NCBI GenBank assembly: GCA_020536535.1
Contig: JAHLWZ010000914.1
Coordinates: forward strand, 1 to 49,061
Reading direction: 5' to 3'
From: Pelomyxa schiedti
Lineage: Eukaryota > Protista > Evosea
DNA length: 49,061 bases
Below, piece after piece: positions 2,412 through 49,061 of this stretch (its first letter is position 1; each line of letters opens with the position of its first letter). The position numbers and the translations under genes are program-made. The notes below the pieces were generated by a model. That model had not been told where the DNA came from. It worked only from the letters and a program-made list of their open reading frames with translations, and did no database searches.

Positions 2412-4151
2412 ATGAAGGGGGTAGCAGCAGGGAAGTGGTGTGTTGTAGCGATAGTGATTGTTGTTGTAGTGATGATGATGAGTGGACTTTGTTGCGGCAA
2501 CGGCGTACCTGACGCGTACGGGTACCCCAATGCAAACGAGAGAAAAGTATGTAGTACTTGTGGGATTGGCCTTTTTTTTTTTTTTTTTATTTTCCCCTCA
2601 CACCGATTTTGTATTTTGTCTCCTATTGCGTTATAGTTGTTTCAAAATATTTTGAAAATAATTATTGATAGTTCTTGGTTCTGCTGAACAATGCGCGGGC
2701 AGACCCTGAGACTGCTCTGGCTGATTGTGCTGGGCCACCCGATGGTCCTTGCAAGGTTTAAATCCAGCTTTGTTTGTTTAGTAAAATAACAAAACAGCTA
2801 ACCTTCTGTAGGAGAAGGTAAACTGTTATGGACCAGTTCGCCCTTTGACTTTTACCAAGTTGAATGCCCATGCTTCAAGGTAGAAAAAAGCGTTGAAAAC
2901 CCATTCCCCTTTGACCACTGCACAGATTTCATTCACAGCATATGACAACAGGTATAACAAAATGAGCAAAGTTACAATAAGTAATTTTTTTTTTTTTTTT
3001 TGATTATCAGGTGGATATTTTGCTCATAACTCGAACTGTGAGCTTGTATCAAATATTGAGACACTTTATCTTGGGGGAACGTGTGCAAATGCCGCAGCAT
3101 CTTGCTCGTGTGTGGGAGGTACTCCCACTTGTGGGTCTGGTTGCACGGACCCATGGGAAAGAGTTGCACTGTTTGAAGGTAGTGCGAATGCAGAAGATAT
3201 TTCCAGCACTGAGGACCCCGAGGTTTCGCTTTTATGCTTTTGATTTTTTACTGACTCCAAGCAGACTTCACTCGACATGTTTTTGACTGAGACAGCGGCA
3301 TCCACTACATGTGAATGGAGTTACACAAACGGTCACAGGTTATTTCTTGTAATTTTCTGTCTATCGGAACGAATTTGCAACAAGATATTCCCTGTTGAAA
3401 TACGGCTATGGAATGGGCGTTGGAGCAGCAGGAAAGTTGACCATTGATATGAGCAGCGGAACCGACTCCGATGAAGATATAAAGTACTTCCATTCGATTC
3501 TTATTGGAACTAACCATCAAAAAAAAAAAGTCTGCCGAGTGGAATGAACCTGGGATCCGGAACCTCCGCAGAATTTTGGGCCAACTGGTACCACCCCTCC
3601 CTGGCACCAACAGTTCACAAAGTCAATGTCGACGGGACTTGCTATGACATGGCCGTGGGGCTCTCACAGACCGCCAACAACACAGCGTACACGCACAGCA
3701 TGAGCCTGTCCACCGGGTGCCACAACTACTACTTCGTGTTCAGCGATGGGACCACAGAGCACACATACCCTTCTGCCGGCAGCCTCACAACCGGCACATC
3801 CTGCAGTGATGGATACAGTTCATCATCAAGGCCCGCAAGTTGCGGTGCGTAGCTTTGGACCCCCCCATGTTTTTTTTTCCCCTCTTCCCTAATGAGTTCC
3901 CAGGTGGCACTACAGAAGAATCCGAATCCACTCCCACTTCCACTTCCGCATCGCGATCCAGATCGACGTCGGAATCGCACTCAACTAGCACTTCTAGGTC
4001 ATTGAGCACGAGCACCGGCACTGAATCATCATCCACAACCCATGTGTCATCCAACACGTACCTGTACTCATCAGTTGGCACACTCACCCACCCCTTACTG
4101 CTACTTGTACCCCTCATTGTCGTTGCTGTGGCTCTTTCAGTGTTGATCTGA
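2412..4151 (+). CDS. Secreted, C-terminally membrane/GPI-anchored CAP (SCP) domain protein, spliced
   Basis: Spliced reading: hydrophobic signal (MKGVAAGKWCVVAIVIVVVV..), YPNANERK|FLVLLNNARADP, HASR|FHSQHMTT|GGYFAHNS, DPWERVALF, NAEDIS, NGHR|YSLL..GMGVG (CAP motifs). Then a Cys-containing beta domain (FWANWY..VNVDGTC..GCHNYYFVF), an S/T-rich stalk and a hydrophobic tail ending at TGA 4149-4151. Confidence 0.75.
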
Positions 4152-43044: not shown

Positions 43045-43614
43045 ATGACTGCAGTTGTGGACACTGCTGTTGTGGCCGAATCTGCGACCAGTAGTAGTAG
43101 TACTAGTGGCAGTAGCAGTGGTGTCAGTTGTACTACAACTTCGACTGCAAGTAGTGGTGGTGCCGGTAGTAGTAGTAGTACGACGTCTGGCGGGGGCGAG
43201 CCTGTTGTTGCGGCGACCACTGCGTCGTCGTTTTTGATGAACGACCCTTTTGTGGACGCCGTTTTCATGGACGCGATCGAGCACTACCAGCCGTGCGGCG
43301 TGAATGCCTACCTGCACGCCTTGTCGATCCAGAACTACATCAGGGAGAGGACCAAGGGCCGCTACCCTGCCGTTCCCACAAGGATGATCCTCCAGCGCTT
43401 CGCGGCCCTGTTCTGCCGCGGCTCCGGAGGCGGCGAGAACTCCACCGAGACCCCCGCCGCGGCCGAGGAGGGCATGGACCTGGCCTCGCCGTCCTTTGGA
43501 GGGGGTGATGATGCCGGCGGGGGTGGGGGCGACAAGAAGACAGGGAAGAAGAAAAAGAAGAAGAAGTACTTTGACATGCCACCACCAGAAAAAAGAAAAG
43601 CGAAAAAGCACTGA
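43045..43614 (+). CDS. EAF7 / MRG-binding protein-like NuA4/TIP60 subunit
   Basis: VDAVFMDAIEHYQPCGVNAYLHALSI...VPTRMILQRFAALF aligns with the MRGBP/Eaf7 core (VEVCLFHAM..HKPVGVNRHFHMICI...VPSKVIWDHL..MY). It has a C-terminal FDMP motif and a basic NLS-like stretch. Confidence 0.7.
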   Translation: MTAVVDTAVVAESATSSSSTSGSSSGVSCTTTSTASSGGAGSSSSTTSGGGEPVVAATTASSFLMNDPFVDAVFMDAIEHYQPCGVNAYLHALSIQNYIRERTKGRYPAVPTRMILQRFAALFCRGSGGGENSTETPAAAEEGMDLASPSFGGGDDAGGGGGDKKTGKKKKKKKYFDMPPPEKRKAKKH

Positions 43615-43928
43615 GAAGCCACCCCATCCCCTTTGCCACACATGTTTCTATCCAGTTACTTATGACTGTACTATGTTTCCAAAGTAGTTATGAGTGGTGC
43701 ACCTGCAGGGAAAAGACTCCTACCAAACCACCTCCTAAATTTGCACAAAGACTGGTGATCACATTGGGCTTTGAGGTATTGAATAAGCCAATTTACTGGA
43801 AATCACTTTCTTCGTCGAAGTACGAAAAACCAAAAAACACAAAAACAAACAAAATCGTTATCGGGCCCCCGCTTCCCCTCAATCAACACCCACCCATCCC
43901 ACAATCCCTGCCGACGAGTTATCTCCGA

Positions 43929-44038
43929 ATGACAACGACCCCTTCCACGTCCACGTCGCCCGCCACCGACTCGCCCTCTCCCTCGTCTCCCCCAACCACG
44001 CCCACGGCGCCCCCCACGGCCACGAGCAGCAGCACCAC

Positions 44039-44073
<35 letters not shown>

Positions 44074-47000
44074 GGGCCGCGCACAACGAGACGTCGGGCC
44101 ACCGCCTGATGATGCCCACCCTGAGCTCCGCCACCGTCCTCACCTCCGCCGACGCCCTGCGCCGCGAGCGCTCGTCGGGACACAGGCGAGGCCGCGCGGG
44201 CGCGCCCGAGGGCGGGGCGCCGCCTCCGCCTCCTCCGACGATGCAGCGCGCGGACGCACACGCGGACGGCGATTATGGGAGCGCAGCCGTAGATGGCAGC
44301 GGAGGCGGTGACGTCAACAGGAGCGTCTCGTTGCCTAGTATGGCAGGTAATGCAACTACAATTTTGGGGGCGTCACCTTCTTGTTCTACTATTAGCAGCA
44401 CAGCAACAACAACGACAACTGCAACTACTAGTACTAGCATTGGTACCAGTAGGAGCCAGAGTTCTGGGGGATTGGCTGGCTTGTGTGAATCGCCGCCTAT
44501 TGGTGATTCCGCTATGATTCCATCGTGCCATGGCGTGGGGCTTGGGAGCACTGTTCACGTTCTGCTGCTGGTTCCAAATAAGGCCAAGGACACTCACTCT
44601 CCAACGGACTCTTGGTGCTGCCGCGTGAGGCCGCCTACGGAAACGAGGAGGATGCTGCATTCTCGATCACCTAGCACTCTGAACCCTGCTTTGCTGCGCA
44701 GGGTTTCGTCCTCTCCAAGTCGGTCTGTGTCAAAGGACCCGGCGGAACCCAGGAATCCCCCAGGAAGCTCGAGTGCGAGGCTGGTCCCGCAGCAATTTGG
44801 CAGCTTCACTGCCAGCCTTTCTTCCAGTGCTGCGAAACTTTCAGGTGCGGGAGCAGATCTTTCTTCAGGTGCTTTGAAGTTGATTGGGGCTGGTAGCCAC
44901 ACTCCGGCTCCTGTGCCGGAGACACGCGTTGCTGAGAAAGAGATACCCGGCATTTTTACCATCCAGAAGAGTGACGATGTCACAATTTTGCGCAGTGGGG
45001 TGGGGGATTGGAGGGATGGAGAGCAAGTTGTAAGACTTTCTGTTAACAAAACTTGGCGGACGTGTCTAGGATTTTATAAGGTATTTTGTTATAGCGTGCA
45101 ATGGAACTCTAAAAATTGAATAGAGAGGCCCCTCAATATTATTTGGTAGCTCCGTTGAACCTGATTCAGGAGAAGCTGATATCATTCTTCACCAGCAATC
45201 ACACCCAGGAGAAGAATGTGTGGTTTCACTCAGATCAGCCATGTTTGTGGATACATGGGTTTCCTTCCGGGTGGATACAGATGGTGCTATACGAACGACC
45301 ACCACTCCGGCTGAAGCTGCTCTATTCTGTACTGAAAACTTTTTCTCCTCTATCACTCACTTTGTCAAGATGTGGAACCCAGTAAAACAGGGAAAAGAGA
45401 GACAAAAGCTGCTGCCGATAGCTTGAACCAAGTGTCGGCGTGGCTTGTACCATGTACGTGTATGAGCTAATTCTACTTTTCTAAAACATTACTACAGCTC
45501 TTCTTAAGACTCATATAAACCCCACACAAAGTGTGATCTTAAAGACCTTGCGTGCCATTGCACCCAAATGGAATCATCCTTTGTCACTCTACTTGCAGAA
45601 TGTTCCTCACTTTCTTTCAACGGACGAAAAAATGCAGTATGAACGCTACTGCACATTAACTTGCTCATTCTTTCAAGGGAAGAATGTTTGTGGATCTACT
45701 GCTTAGAGTTCCTCGAGCTTCAGCCAGGGCTTTCATTTTTGCAGGTTAATTTAGGCTGTGGGCAGACAGCCCATCTCGCTTGTGATATCCTTGCTGCAAA
45801 TGACGCACAGCCATCCTTTTATACTGGTTGGGATACAAGTTCTATGTTGGAGCCTTTGTTGCAGTATGATTGTCGGTGTCGTATCTTTCAATTTAACCCC
45901 GATCAAAGATATGTGCACAGGCACAGGCACGCCAGGGCAGGACACATCGCAGTTTCTGTCCAAAACACCTACACATTTTCCAACAAGTACAAAGCCAAGT
46001 ACGATAGGGTTCTGTTGTGTGGGAGGGTGAGCCAAGGAAGATTTCATCAGATGACAACCCTGCTGAGGCCAAGAGGTCTTATGATGGTATGTCAAAATTC
46101 GCAAGGAGTGATCATTAAGCAACTATAGGCATGCTTTGATACACTGGCTGGACCCAATTTATTTTTGGTCAGGAAGAGTTTAGAAGGGGAAATTTCCCGA
46201 GACGTGATACCCGTCCCTGGTACCCTATAGAATACAAATGGACCCTAATTTCCTTCAGATTTCATACGCCTTTCCGCAGTTCTTGTGTTCCCTGAACCTT
46301 CCCTGGTCTTTGAAATTAACGACCGAGTACGCTTCTACCAATTGCACACCTAATTCCAAAAACCCTTAGATATCACACTTCCATGGAGATTTAACTGATG
46401 AAGAAGGTTTATAGCCTCATTTTGGTAATAACTTAATGTCATTTAGAGTTAAAACAATGGCTTTGCTACTTTGGAGATGCCTATGGGATGGATTTGAGCA
46501 CCTATTCCACAAAACTCATTCAGGAGGGATTCACACTGCCTTTAATTAAAGAAGGTACAACTGCTTGAGCCATTTCCCCCACTCATACTCCTATCAGGAG
46601 GCCTTAGCTTAGATGACCTTTTGCGTATTAACATTCCACAAAGCGATATCAGTGGATTAGCTTGTGCATTGACGAAGTATTCAGAATTTATTGCCCGGAA
46701 AGCGGAATCTGCACTCAACGAGATAAAAAGTAACACCATTTCGACCGTCTCACCTCAATTAAATAAACGAAAAGAGAAGGCTGTTAATATTGAGGTTTCA
46801 ATTAAAAAGTTCAACCTGGACATTGTCAGAGTGGACGCAGTTCAGTCGGAATTTGAAGTACACCTGCAGTTCGTCATAACCTACCATGATGATGCATGTT
46901 GGCGAGCTTTCATGGTATATAGCTACCACCTATTGAGACCCTCATCTTACTCCTGTTTCCAGACGAAAAAACCCACAGATGAGGACCGGAAATTAATTGC

Positions 47001-48346
47001 CTTGACTGATCTTAGTGTTTTACCTAATTTCTCCTTTCCCAATTCCAGAGGAACAGTTGAAACACTTGGGCAGGTCTTATCTACTCTTTAGCTTCACGTA
47101 ATTGACATGAATTTAGAACGCTTGGATTTACCCGAAAACTGGTACAATTGAGGTGTCAACCCTTTTTTCTGGAATTTTCTTTGAGATTATGGAACTGCAA
47201 CGATTTCCTTTTGACCGACAGGTACTTTACTATTCGTAAGATCTTTAACCAATCGCTGGATAGTTACTCCATATTTATCTTATGCACGACAAAGATAATC
47301 AACACAATGTCACCCTCAAATGGAAGGAAACACAGTACCACACCCTATCAATTTCAATGAAATTCACCTCTTCTTAGAAATACAGACATGAAGCTGGTTA
47401 CAAATGACCGAGAATGGAAAGAGGCCCACCCATCAATTGCTTTCCCCACTGGCACAGAGACAAAACTGGTGAGTAACTCTATGCAGTATTTGCATTCGAA
47501 AAACTTAATGAACATCAGGCACTTCTTGGAAGAGTGGAAAGTATGCCCTTTTTTCCTTTTCATTTTACAACCCCGTTTTAATTTTTCTTTTCTAGGGTTA
47601 TCTACGTACTTCATGTGGAACGTTGTATTTGTGGTAATTCCCCCTGTCAGAATCCAAACCCAAAAAAATCGAAACTCCCGAACCACCAAATAAACTCCCA
47701 ACAAGATGCTCCTCATTGTGTCTATGAGCTTTATTGCCTGGTGTCTTGACCCAACAGAAGGAGGAGACCGGCTAGGAATCAACCTCACACTGTTGCTCAC
47801 AGCAGTCGCCTACAAGGTAAACACCCTTCCTTTGCAAAACTCTGACCTTGTTTACAGTATGTCATTGGAGCGTACCTTCCAAAGACCGCGTACCTAACAA
47901 TCCTGGATTACTACATCCTCTCGGCATTCGTTCTCCTGATTATAATCATTGTTGAGAACGGAATTGCAGCTGCTGTATCCGAGCCAACAAACGCCGAATT
48001 AGACAAGTGGTCAGAGATAATCCTTATTCCTGTATGTACTAAACTCCCTCTTCATTCTATCCAGAAACCACAAAACAAAACAAAACAAAACAAAACAAAA
48101 CAAAACAAAACAAAACAAAACAAAACAAAACAAAACAAAAACCGGCTATAATTCCCTTAACTACACCTAATTCCAATGTAATAGGTATGGATGCTGCTCA
48201 ACATTGTAATTGTTGCCGGATCAATATTTGGCTTCTTCAATCAGAGCTGGGAGGCTGTTGATGCCAGCCAGGATGAAACAGCACCCCCTGAACAAAGGGC
48301 TGCAGAACTAGCTGAAGAAATGGAACTTAAAGAACATGATGATTAG
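43929..48346 (+). CDS. Multidomain Cys-less pentameric ligand-gated ion channel: low-complexity N-terminus, PCMT/PCMTD-like methyltransferase domain, SAM-like domain, pLGIC ligand-binding domain, four TM helices
   Basis: A continuous GT-AG splice path can be traced by eye. MTase: VILKTLRAI..CLEFLELQPGLSFLQVNLGCG..YDRVLL..LLRPRGLMM. SAM-like: EEELKQWL...LSTYSTKLIQEGFTL..LSLDDLLRINI. pLGIC: IVRVDAVQSEFEVH, LPNFSFPN, MELQRFPFDRQ, RLSTYFMWNV, GDRLGINLTLLLTAVAY, LPKTAYLTILD, DKWS..VWMLLN. Confidence 0.8.
48071..48140 (+). repeat. (CAAAA)14 microsatellite in the last intron of the pLGIC gene
   Basis: Perfect pentanucleotide tandem array seen directly. Confidence 0.95.
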
Positions 48347-48510
48347 CACCCACAACATCAGCATCAATAAACAAACTAATCACAACCAAGCAAACATAAC
48401 CCCTGGACACAGCTACAAATAACAAGTAACAATAACTCAATAAAAACCCATCAAAAAGTGCTTTTGTGTTATCTAGTTTTGGGTACTTGTATTCTTTTGT
48501 GGGCAGATCC

Positions 48511-49061
48511 TCATGAGGATTTTGTGGCGTAGAGGCACAGGTAAGCAATATGCCATTCAGCTGAATGTGTGTTAGCAGTGCCGGTTTTGTTATTGTGGTA
48601 TTTTTACCTCCTCCTTTGCCATCAAGTTTGGCTATATCACTGGGGTCTGCAACTCGAACTTTGTCGTCATCAAACAGAAGCCATGAGTCTGTGTGGATAT
48701 TAACTGCGGAGAATTTGCAAATGAAACGCACCATCGTCTTGTTTCACCCACGCAACATAATGTCCTCCATCAGAGTATATTCCTTTGTGTGTAACCACGG
48801 CTTTGAGAGTGTACTGCCCAGTGTCATTCTCTGCCGGAGTTTTAGTTCCAAAGTTGATACATTTGAATGGAGTTGTACCTGCGTTTTCTGGGTTGACAGG
48901 TAGTGCCGCAACCGGGGGCGCGGTTGTTGCAGGAGAGGAAGTATCCATGGGAGTTGGGGATTCGGTGGAGGATGTGGTTGTTGTACTTGTGGTTGTTGCG
49001 GAAGTAGCTGGAGTAGATGTAGAGGGAGTCACATCTAAAGATGCTTCAAGAAGAGCTCTGC
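48511..49061 (-). CDS. USP14: Proteasome-associated deubiquitinase USP14/Ubp6, 3' exons (partial)
   Basis: NDTGQYTLKAVVTHKGIYSDGGHYVAWVKQDD|DSWLLFDDDKV...DIAKLDGKGG|AEWHIAYLCLYATKSS*: His box and the USP14-type C-terminus. Confidence 0.9.

Follow-up and report, generated by a model that had tools for sequence, protein, structure and literature searches.

The anaerobic archamoeba Pelomyxa schiedti carries a gene in which a complete pLGIC (pentameric ligand-gated ion channel) subunit follows a long N-terminal extension of unusual composition. The gene, Pelo_14066 (GenBank KAH3744552.1, "hypothetical protein Pelo_14066," 1134 aa; P0001 in our analysis), occupies positions 43929 to 48346 on the plus strand of contig JAHLWZ010000914.1 (assembly GCA_020536535.1), and positions 1 to 49,061 of this contig constitute the window analyzed here. 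Ahead of the channel lie ∼790 residues that are predicted to comprise a disordered Ser/Thr/Pro (S/T/P) stretch, a probable beta-trefoil, a domain with the fold of the protein-isoaspartate methyltransferases (PCMT) and PCMTD proteins, and a sterile alpha motif (SAM)-like domain. We consider it probable that the product is a Pro-loop pLGIC subunit with N-terminal pseudo-methyltransferase and SAM-like modules that holds its ligand-binding domain (LBD) in the cytosol, is gated by a cytosolic ligand, and bears its added modules as a regulatory crown.

The C-terminal 350 aa are clearly a Cys-less (Pro-loop) pLGIC. The ligand-binding beta-sandwich domain (46775 to 47540, plus strand; aa ∼795 to 974, exons 12 to 17) was recognized with Pfam, profile comparison against the PDB, AlphaFold2 (AF2) modeling, and Foldseek, and the transmembrane domain (TMD; 47596 to 48238, plus strand) with the Pfam Neur_chan_memb model, hydropathy, and the AF2 helices. 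The Pro-loop FPFD, the Cys-less equivalent of the Cys-loop, can be read directly at 47204 to 47215 (plus strand) and is invariant in nine family members. The transmembrane segments follow on the same strand: M1 at 47607-47633 and 47706-47747, the M1-M2 loop at 47748-47771, M2 at 47772-47816, M3 at ∼47894-47956, and, after an M3-M4 loop of ∼22 aa, M4 at 48017-48031 and 48185-48238. Alignment with ELIC fixes the M2 register, with D at -1' (47766-47768), R at 0' (47769-47771), T at 6', and L at 9' (47796-47798), so that the Pro-loop, the four helices, and the -1', 0', and 9' residues reported by a first-pass annotation of this DNA are all confirmed. By analogy with known channels that have an acidic residue at -1', the channel is probably cation-selective. 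The acidic C-terminal tail (48239 to 48346 including the stop, plus strand) opens with a post-M4 motif, S-W-x-x-V-D/E-x-x-Q, in which W1103 and Q1110 are invariant. This motif (48239-48270, aa 1100-1110) lies on the ligand-binding side of the membrane and is conserved across the whole clade of channels lacking signal peptides that is described below; canonical pLGICs have almost no tail after M4.

A profile built from ten family members matched 300 distinct PDB sequences at an E value of ≤0.01, with ELIC as the best match (7e-28), followed by GLIC chimeras, the GABA-A beta3 receptor (∼1e-24), and DeCLIC (2.9e-21). Pfam Neur_chan_memb scored 33.8 bits on P0001 against a cutoff of 28.1, and Neur_chan_LBD remained below its cutoff, with E values of 2e-3 on P0001 and 1e-5 on the paralog P0002. 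When single exons were scanned with Pfam, the LBD exons gave no match and two of the TMD exons gave weak Neur_chan_memb matches. The AF2 model of the channel (pLDDT 75.7) consists of a beta-sandwich and four helices, and Foldseek aligned it over its whole length (∼340 columns) with GABA-A beta3, GluCl, GLIC, and sTeLIC (E ∼1e-19, TM score 0.55-0.66).

The PCMT/PCMTD-like Rossmann domain occupies 45498 to 46326 on the plus strand (aa ∼482 to 700, exons 4 to 8), and its cofactor and substrate motifs are degenerate. Its recognizable strings (LELQPGLSFL, QVNLGCG, GWD, YDRV, and LLRPRG) all fall within 45678-46086. Exon-by-exon scanning with Pfam gave no match on the PCMT-like exons, and on the assembled domain Pfam PCMT (PF01135) reached 11.2 and 15.0 bits in two of five paralogs, under the 20.3-bit cutoff. 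A sequence search of the PDB with a single exon matched only PCMTD1 and one PCMT, and a six-paralog profile matched PCMTD1 over the full length of the domain (E 7.9e-4), all four of its matches being PCMTs. Among 1.84 billion representative proteins, 14 were retrieved at an E value of 1e-3, namely three models of the family itself and 11 others. All seven of those others that were scanned with Pfam carry PCMT, several of them fused to BTB-BACK or RING (Pharyngomonas, Mastigella, Anaeramoeba); three of the four unscanned matches appear PCMT-like by eye, and the fourth, P0007, is a repetitive protein that we took to be a false match. An AF2 model of residues 335-792 (pLDDT 75.3) returned PCMTs as its top 14 Foldseek matches (E 7e-8 to 4e-6), and comparison of model residues 130-358 with whole chains gave VIA Z values of 13.5-17.7 for PCMTs (14.8 for PCMTD1) and ≤12.1 for other methyltransferases. 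The VIA and Foldseek lists for this three-domain model were filled by PCMT matches, and the fold comparison therefore speaks for the PCMT-like part only. Because VIA Z values, top Foldseek matches, and profile matches all point to PCMTs, we assign this domain a PCMT-type fold, and the methyltransferase-like segment posited in the first-pass annotation is thus backed by both profile and structure.

Aligned with genuine PCMT-domain proteins, the family retains the blocks LQPG-SFL, N-C-F, DR-hh-G, and LLKPGG. Motif I, which reads D-I/V-G-S-G-C/S-G in genuine members, is QVNLGCG in P0001 and NVSIG, NVGTG, or GLSQC in paralogs, the acidic residue before the glycine loop is replaced by Q or H, and where genuine members have the substrate-binding SAP motif, the five paralog models read Q-E-E, E-T-R, E-T-Q, or Q-E-Q. 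The post-I Asp is present as G-W-D (A-W-D in the closest paralog) in four of five models, and at the exact position in four of six loci; P0003 and the locus on contig C423 (L015) have W-N-I-D instead. The alignment bears out the earlier observation of a degenerate motif I with a conserved downstream acidic residue. Since the glycine loop and the SAP motif have been lost and the loop varies between paralogs, the sequence comparison suggests that this domain is probably a pseudoenzyme derived from a PCMTD-like branch.

Between the pseudoenzyme and the channel, residues ∼702-791 (46370 to 46729, plus strand; exons 9 to 11) form a five-helix domain that we regard with moderate confidence as SAM-like. 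The AF2 helices span aa 711-726, 730-739, 744-750, 754-759, and 764-791 (pLDDT ∼78-86), and a few residues separate the last of them from the first LBD strand in the model. A full-length profile of the domain matched the Caskin-1 SAM (E 2.8e-5 and 1.2e-4), Caskin-2 (0.04-0.05), and the MAP3K15 SAM (0.44) in the PDB, and Pfam SAM_1 and SAM_2 matched none of the seven family members. The helical SAM-like segment of the first-pass annotation stands as to its five helices; as to sequence the evidence is mixed, with profile matches to Caskin and no counterpart among the Pfam SAM models. Two top-ranked IcmE/DotG matches of the same profile are repeat artifacts in which no single stretch passes, and a CheR_N match (E 0.1, one member) was set aside as chance. 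Half-domain profiles, which are too short for this purpose, gave nonsignificant SAM matches for the N-terminal half and none for the C-terminal half in the PDB.

Upstream of the PCMT-like domain, a beta-rich domain X (44940 to 45420, plus strand; aa ∼338 to 470, from the end of exon 1 through exon 2 into exon 3) is conserved in all paralogs, and its AF2 strands have a pLDDT of 75-87. It is probably a beta-trefoil, the signals being weak but concordant: its leads are an IL-18/IL-36 profile match (E 0.4-1.2) and a subthreshold Pfam IL1 match in one paralog (E 0.08), its Atlas feature look-alikes at 0.90 all belong to beta-trefoil families and include ricin-type lectins, and Foldseek returned IP3-receptor matches. 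The remaining N-terminal region (43929 to 44939, plus strand; aa 1 to 337) is S/T/P-rich, of low complexity and GC-rich, and can be aligned only with the closest paralog. GC content in the first exon (44001-45000) is 61%, compared with 41-44% in the remainder of the gene, which fits Ser/Thr/Pro/Ala/Gly-rich coding.

The gene runs from an ATG at 43929 to a stop codon at 48344-48346, with a coding length of 3405 nt (1134 codons plus stop) distributed over 21 exons with GT-AG junctions. We read the three forward frames of 43900-48400 and checked every GT..AG junction; the frame stays open to the stop, and the exon-wise translations fall in order on P0001, itself found by a profile search of the largest exon against the 1.84 billion representative proteins. 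On the plus strand, exons 1 to 7 lie at 43929-45080, 45124-45328, 45370-45453, 45498-45636, 45678-45863, 45909-46086, and 46129-46219, exons 8 to 14 at 46259-46326, 46370-46406, 46447-46554, 46598-46729, 46775-46914, 46963-47073, and 47117-47221, and exons 15 to 21 at 47264-47334, 47378-47468, 47519-47540, 47596-47633, 47706-47816, 47858-48031, and 48185-48346. One splice path indeed joins the PCMT-like, SAM-like, and channel segments, as had been claimed from the letters alone, and the matching five paralogs and annotated protein exclude a chance origin for it. Two in-frame introns of 45 nt on the plus strand, at 45864-45908 in the PCMT-like region (GT..AG) and at 46730-46774 in the SAM-to-LBD linker (outside the RNA cover), are removed in the public model, and the reading frame by itself cannot tell either from read-through. 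At the first of these the closest paralog differs though both flanks are conserved, and other paralogs have an obligatory intron at the same place; at the second, paralogs L014-L016 shift frame, which makes an intron there obligatory.

Further evidence bears on whether the modules and the channel belong to a single protein. The exon with the end of the SAM-like domain also carries the linker, the first LBD strands follow in frame, and no Met lies between them (exons 11 and 12); the exon-to-exon gaps at the PCMT-SAM-LBD junctions measure 39-50 nt. In the transcriptome of Pelomyxa sp. JSP (EukProt EP01106), the open reading frames (ORFs) P0017 and P0022 contain most of the SAM-like domain together with the channel in one frame. 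The public model, the paralog order, and the JSP ORFs bear out the earlier proposal of a single gene that leads from a PCMT/PCMTD-like domain through a SAM-like one to a complete Cys-less pLGIC. The amoebozoan origin supposed in the first-pass annotation is likewise correct.

RNA evidence came from contigs of two small single-cell RNA runs that contain the locus. They confirm eight channel introns (46915-46962, 47074-47116, 47335-47377, 47469-47518, 47541-47595, 47634-47705, 47817-47857, and 48032-48184) and show the 3' part fully spliced from exon 15 into the 3' untranslated region, so the channel exons are expressed. Cover is confined to the 3' 1.6 kb and starts at 46781; as a check of the joined transcript, for which the first-pass annotation had looked to RNA, these data establish the channel introns and do not reach the PCMT-like and SAM-like exons. 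None of the RNA contigs shows splicing of intron 47222-47263. One contig (X1 record 3) is unspliced across 47222-47263 and 47335-47377 with the next intron spliced and is a partly processed or intron-retaining transcript.

The 52-Mb assembly contains five further loci, on contigs C1065, C530, C237, C423, and C1020, that repeat this exon set with order and strand unchanged, with intron-sized gaps between the exons and with identities from ∼75% down to 30-45%. In this genome the PCMT-like and SAM-like modules are confined to these six loci. In comparison with the closest paralog, the proportion of synonymous differences (pS) is ∼0.75 (saturated) in every module and the proportion of nonsynonymous differences (pN) is 0.09 for the SAM-like domain, 0.13 for the PCMT-like domain, 0.12 for the LBD, 0.14 for the TMD, and 0.23 for domain X; the low pN against saturated pS indicates that all modules are under purifying selection. 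Approximately nine other, more divergent pLGIC loci (C1721, C238, C346, C838, C1004, C998, C93, C187, and C583) share the motif F-E-L-Q/V-R-F-P-L-D-R, and PCMT-like or SAM-like exons were not detectable at them. Searching the genome with PF02932 recovered few loci, and the family profile recovered many more. Profile searches of the protein library found no PCMT-like-plus-channel protein outside Pelomyxa. In the public annotation two of the paralogs are automatically named GABA receptor subunits. The -1' residue is D in two paralog pairs and G in the third, C423/C1020 (L015 4727-4837, L016 4894-5004), which also lacks the intron between the M1 exons, and charge selectivity may differ between subfamilies.

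Additional observations concern individual models and copies. The P0002 model (KAH3765081.1; L014, G000:C237) omits ∼30 PCMT-like residues at 3327-3420 that are open and conserved in the DNA, and its acceptor site was probably mischosen in annotation. The end of contig C85 (L018, G000:C85:16500-19891, minus strand) holds a copy of exon 20, identical at the protein level, followed by a diverged intron, and from 47971 onward (47971-48600) identical base changes and short indels recur in all four runs, which is suggestive of a second haplotype or a recent duplicate. We rejected C85 as a seventh family member, the contig end holding a near-identical copy of exons 20 and 21.

The orientation of the subunit in the membrane is the most consequential part of our interpretation. 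In the five annotated paralog models, hydropathy showed no hydrophobic stretch among the first 70 residues or elsewhere ahead of M1, and hence no signal peptide. A search of 5.8 billion proteins with the channel profile returned close relatives from Pelomyxa sp. JSP, Amorphochlora, Paulinella, Nonionella, Chlamydomonas, Symbiodinium, and metagenomes, and ∼35 of 40 of these lack an N-terminal hydrophobic signal, which is present in all eight distant canonical channels (bacterial and sea urchin glycine receptor-like). We also counted Lys and Arg near the membrane on the LBD side (pre-M1, M2-M3 loop, and post-M4) and in the M1-M2 and M3-M4 loops; an excess on the LBD side was found in 40 of 41 clade members versus none of eight canonical channels, with a nominal P value of 2e-8 that is overstated since the sequences are related. 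Some relatives have Pfam-significant domains ahead of the LBD, namely a pleckstrin homology (PH) domain in P0033 (residues 3-106) and P0047 and a SAM domain in P0042 (Amorphochlora) and P0043. No hydrophobic segment lies between the added domain and the LBD in P0033, P0042, and P0043; P0047 has one near residue 414. PH, SAM, and PCMT domains are of cytosolic kinds, and a large N-terminal domain without a signal stays cytosolic when the first helix inserts, as in Sec61 signal anchors. Because there is no signal peptide or pre-M1 helix, the charge bias is reversed, and relatives carry PH or SAM domains, these sequence features suggest that the ligand-binding side probably faces the cytosol in an N-in, C-in subunit. 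The missing signal and the reversed charge bias point away from the outward-facing LBD assumed in the first-pass annotation.

We favor, by a modest degree of belief, an extension of this reading to a widespread protist pLGIC clade (Amoebozoa, Rhizaria, green algae, and dinoflagellates) that would be inserted inverted, with the LBD, N-terminus, and C-terminal tail in the cytosol, would be gated by intracellular ligands, and would have acquired lineage-specific cytosolic sensor or scaffold modules (PH and SAM in relatives; beta-trefoil, PCMT-like pseudoenzyme, and SAM-like domain in Pelomyxa).

Several observations weigh against a cytosolic LBD and the architecture built on it. The N-termini all derive from automatic gene models or transcriptome ORFs, in which a short signal peptide exon may be missed; the signal test is a crude hydropathy measure applied to related clade members whose counts are not independent; and the pre-M1 Arg and M2-M3 Lys are partly conserved in canonical channels as well. 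Pfam does not recognize the PCMT-like or SAM-like parts, the SAM call comes from one profile search and a medium-confidence model, and the post-I Asp kept in most paralogs leaves room for some nucleotide binding. The stretch 43929-46780 is without RNA cover, leaving the 5' end and the PCMT-SAM-channel link without transcript-level support in P. schiedti. Part of this evidence would be accommodated by a canonical orientation, in which a missed signal peptide or an unusual insertion places the LBD and the modules outside or in the lumen and the trefoil and S/T/P stretch form a glycosylated, sugar-binding outer part. It is generally accepted that every pLGIC studied so far has an outward LBD, an extracellular location would suit the mucin-like S/T/P stretch and a ricin-type beta-trefoil just as well, ricin-type lectins being among the look-alikes of domain X, and the 5' end lies outside the RNA cover. 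We nevertheless judge this arrangement unlikely: a signal sequence is absent from five independent paralog models and from ∼35 of 40 relatives, whose sequences come from genomes and transcriptomes across several phyla, the charge bias is reversed, the PH, SAM, and PCMT modules are cytosolic in kind, and only 314 bases separate an upstream ORF stop (43612-43614) from the ATG at 43929.

The first-pass annotation had instead envisaged a cation channel gated or regulated by S-adenosylmethionine (AdoMet), S-adenosylhomocysteine (AdoHcy), or isoaspartate (isoAsp)-damaged proteins in a working PCMT-type pocket. Such gating draws on the PCMT/PCMTD-like fold, the mostly retained post-I acidic residue, and the purifying selection on the domain, and human PCMTD1 is reported to use the same fold for binding rather than catalysis (PMC12590147). 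It is nonetheless improbable in our view: no paralog retains the SAP motif, Q or H stands in place of the acidic residue ahead of the loop, the loop sequence is not conserved between paralogs, and Pfam PCMT scores of 11-15 bits are reached in two of five paralogs only. The loss of the SAP motif and of the pre-loop acidic residue, together with the variable loop, makes gating by AdoMet, AdoHcy, or isoAsp peptides unlikely on these grounds. A merger in annotation of a PCMT-like/SAM-like gene with a channel gene, or a decaying pseudogene, would be compatible with the lack of an RNA contig across 45498-46780 and with the one contig that keeps two introns. We hold either to be very improbable, given that the LBD lacks a separate start codon or signal and lies in one exon and frame with the end of the SAM-like domain, that exon gaps are 39-50 nt with order and frame kept in six paralogs, that JSP transcripts join the SAM-like domain to the LBD, and that purifying selection is strong.

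For a subunit with a cytosolic LBD, we hypothesize that M1 most likely acts as an N-in signal anchor that would leave the LBD, the N-terminal modules, and the C-terminal tail in the cytosol, and that a ligand or partner in the cytosol would open the channel. The N-terminal modules, in five copies, could then sit atop the ligand-binding ring as a regulatory or scaffolding crown, in analogy to the lobes of DeCLIC, and would bind proteins instead of catalyzing methylation; clustering through the SAM-like domain is possible. A channel that would sense from the cytosolic side with a noncatalytic regulatory crown is the more interesting interpretation when set beside AdoMet gating.

To our knowledge, all pLGICs that have been studied are receptors for extracellular or periplasmic signals, and the known accessory N-terminal domains (DeCLIC and bacterial fusions to periplasmic sensor domains) are outward-facing. 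If the proposed orientation is true, gating from inside the cell would be a new working mode for a well-studied channel superfamily. In that case the six-member family would also offer a natural system in which to study the coupling of added domains to the ligand-binding ring. A probable PCMT-fold pseudoenzyme has been recruited here as part of a channel, invisibly to Pfam-based architecture tables; because Pfam misses both modules ahead of the channel, an architecture database would show these proteins as simple channels. A literature search, with subscription journals outside it, returned nothing relevant on pLGICs that carry SAM, PH, or methyltransferase domains or have an inverted topology, consistent with the earlier impression that the architecture had not been described. 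A survey of protist pLGICs (PMC4795631) makes no mention of such fusions, signal peptides, or inverted orientation.

Two further features lie at the 3' end of the gene. The last intron (48032-48184) contains an (AAAAC)n microsatellite of ∼14 units at 48062-48146, where DNA-run contigs stop. A convergent neighbor gene on the minus strand (48327-49061), which overlaps the channel gene's 3' end with its stop, has an intron at 48561-48607 (CT..AC on the plus strand) confirmed by RNA contigs, and from its C-terminus (G-H-Y-V-A-W-V-K) we presume that it resembles a ubiquitin-specific protease.

Among known systems, the Pelomyxa channel comes closest in sequence to ELIC and GLIC (E 7e-28) and shares with them the FPFD Pro-loop, the acidic -1' residue, R at 0', T at 6', L at 9', a very short M3-M4 loop, and the absence of Cys-loop cysteines. 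These bacterial channels have a signal peptide and basic M3-M4 loops and lack added domains; the Pelomyxa protein carries ∼790 additional residues at its N-terminus and a conserved post-M4 motif, lacks a signal, and has an M3-M4 loop that is acidic. DeCLIC of Desulfofustis (PDB 6v4a; PMC9897478) resembles the Pelomyxa protein in having folded modules joined directly to the N-terminus of the LBD and thus sitting above it. In DeCLIC these lobes are beta-rich, lie in the periplasm, and bind calcium; the Pelomyxa modules, in contrast, are of cytosolic kinds (PCMT-like and SAM-like) and have no export signal. The DeCLIC modulatory crown likely provides a working analogy for them.

The closest solved relative of the PCMT-like domain is human PCMTD1 (PDB 9oma/9omf), with LQPG-SFL and N-C-F/L common to both; it is grouped here with the protist PCMT-BTB and PCMT-RING proteins, and it uses the PCMT fold as a binding module placed beside a protein interaction module (PMC12590147). 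The GxGxG loop and the SAP motif are intact in PCMTD1 and in these protist proteins and lost in the Pelomyxa family, and the partner of the fold in Pelomyxa is an ion channel instead of a ubiquitin ligase adaptor. The SAM domains of Caskin-1 and Caskin-2, the best genuine PDB matches of the SAM-like profile, align over helices 2 to 5 with low similarity; Caskin SAMs polymerize, and the Pelomyxa domain is likened to them by sequence profile. Finally, the SAM- and PH-bearing pLGICs (P0042 of Amorphochlora amoebiformis, the environmental P0043 and P0033, and P0047 from EukProt) are members of the same clade of channels (E 1e-30 to 1e-54 with the profile), with FPFDRQ in P0033, P0042, and P0043 and YPMDRQ in P0047. 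They too lack a signal peptide, place a domain of cytosolic type ahead of the LBD, and show the reversed charge bias, with P0043 (5 versus 6) as the exception to the last, and they differ from the Pelomyxa family in that their SAM or PH domain is recognized by Pfam and placed at the very N-terminus and in that they contain no PCMT-like domain. Since the Pelomyxa SAM-like profile does not match the Amorphochlora-type SAM (hhalign E 0.09, not significant), the SAM fusions in Pelomyxa and in P0042 and P0043 may have arisen independently.

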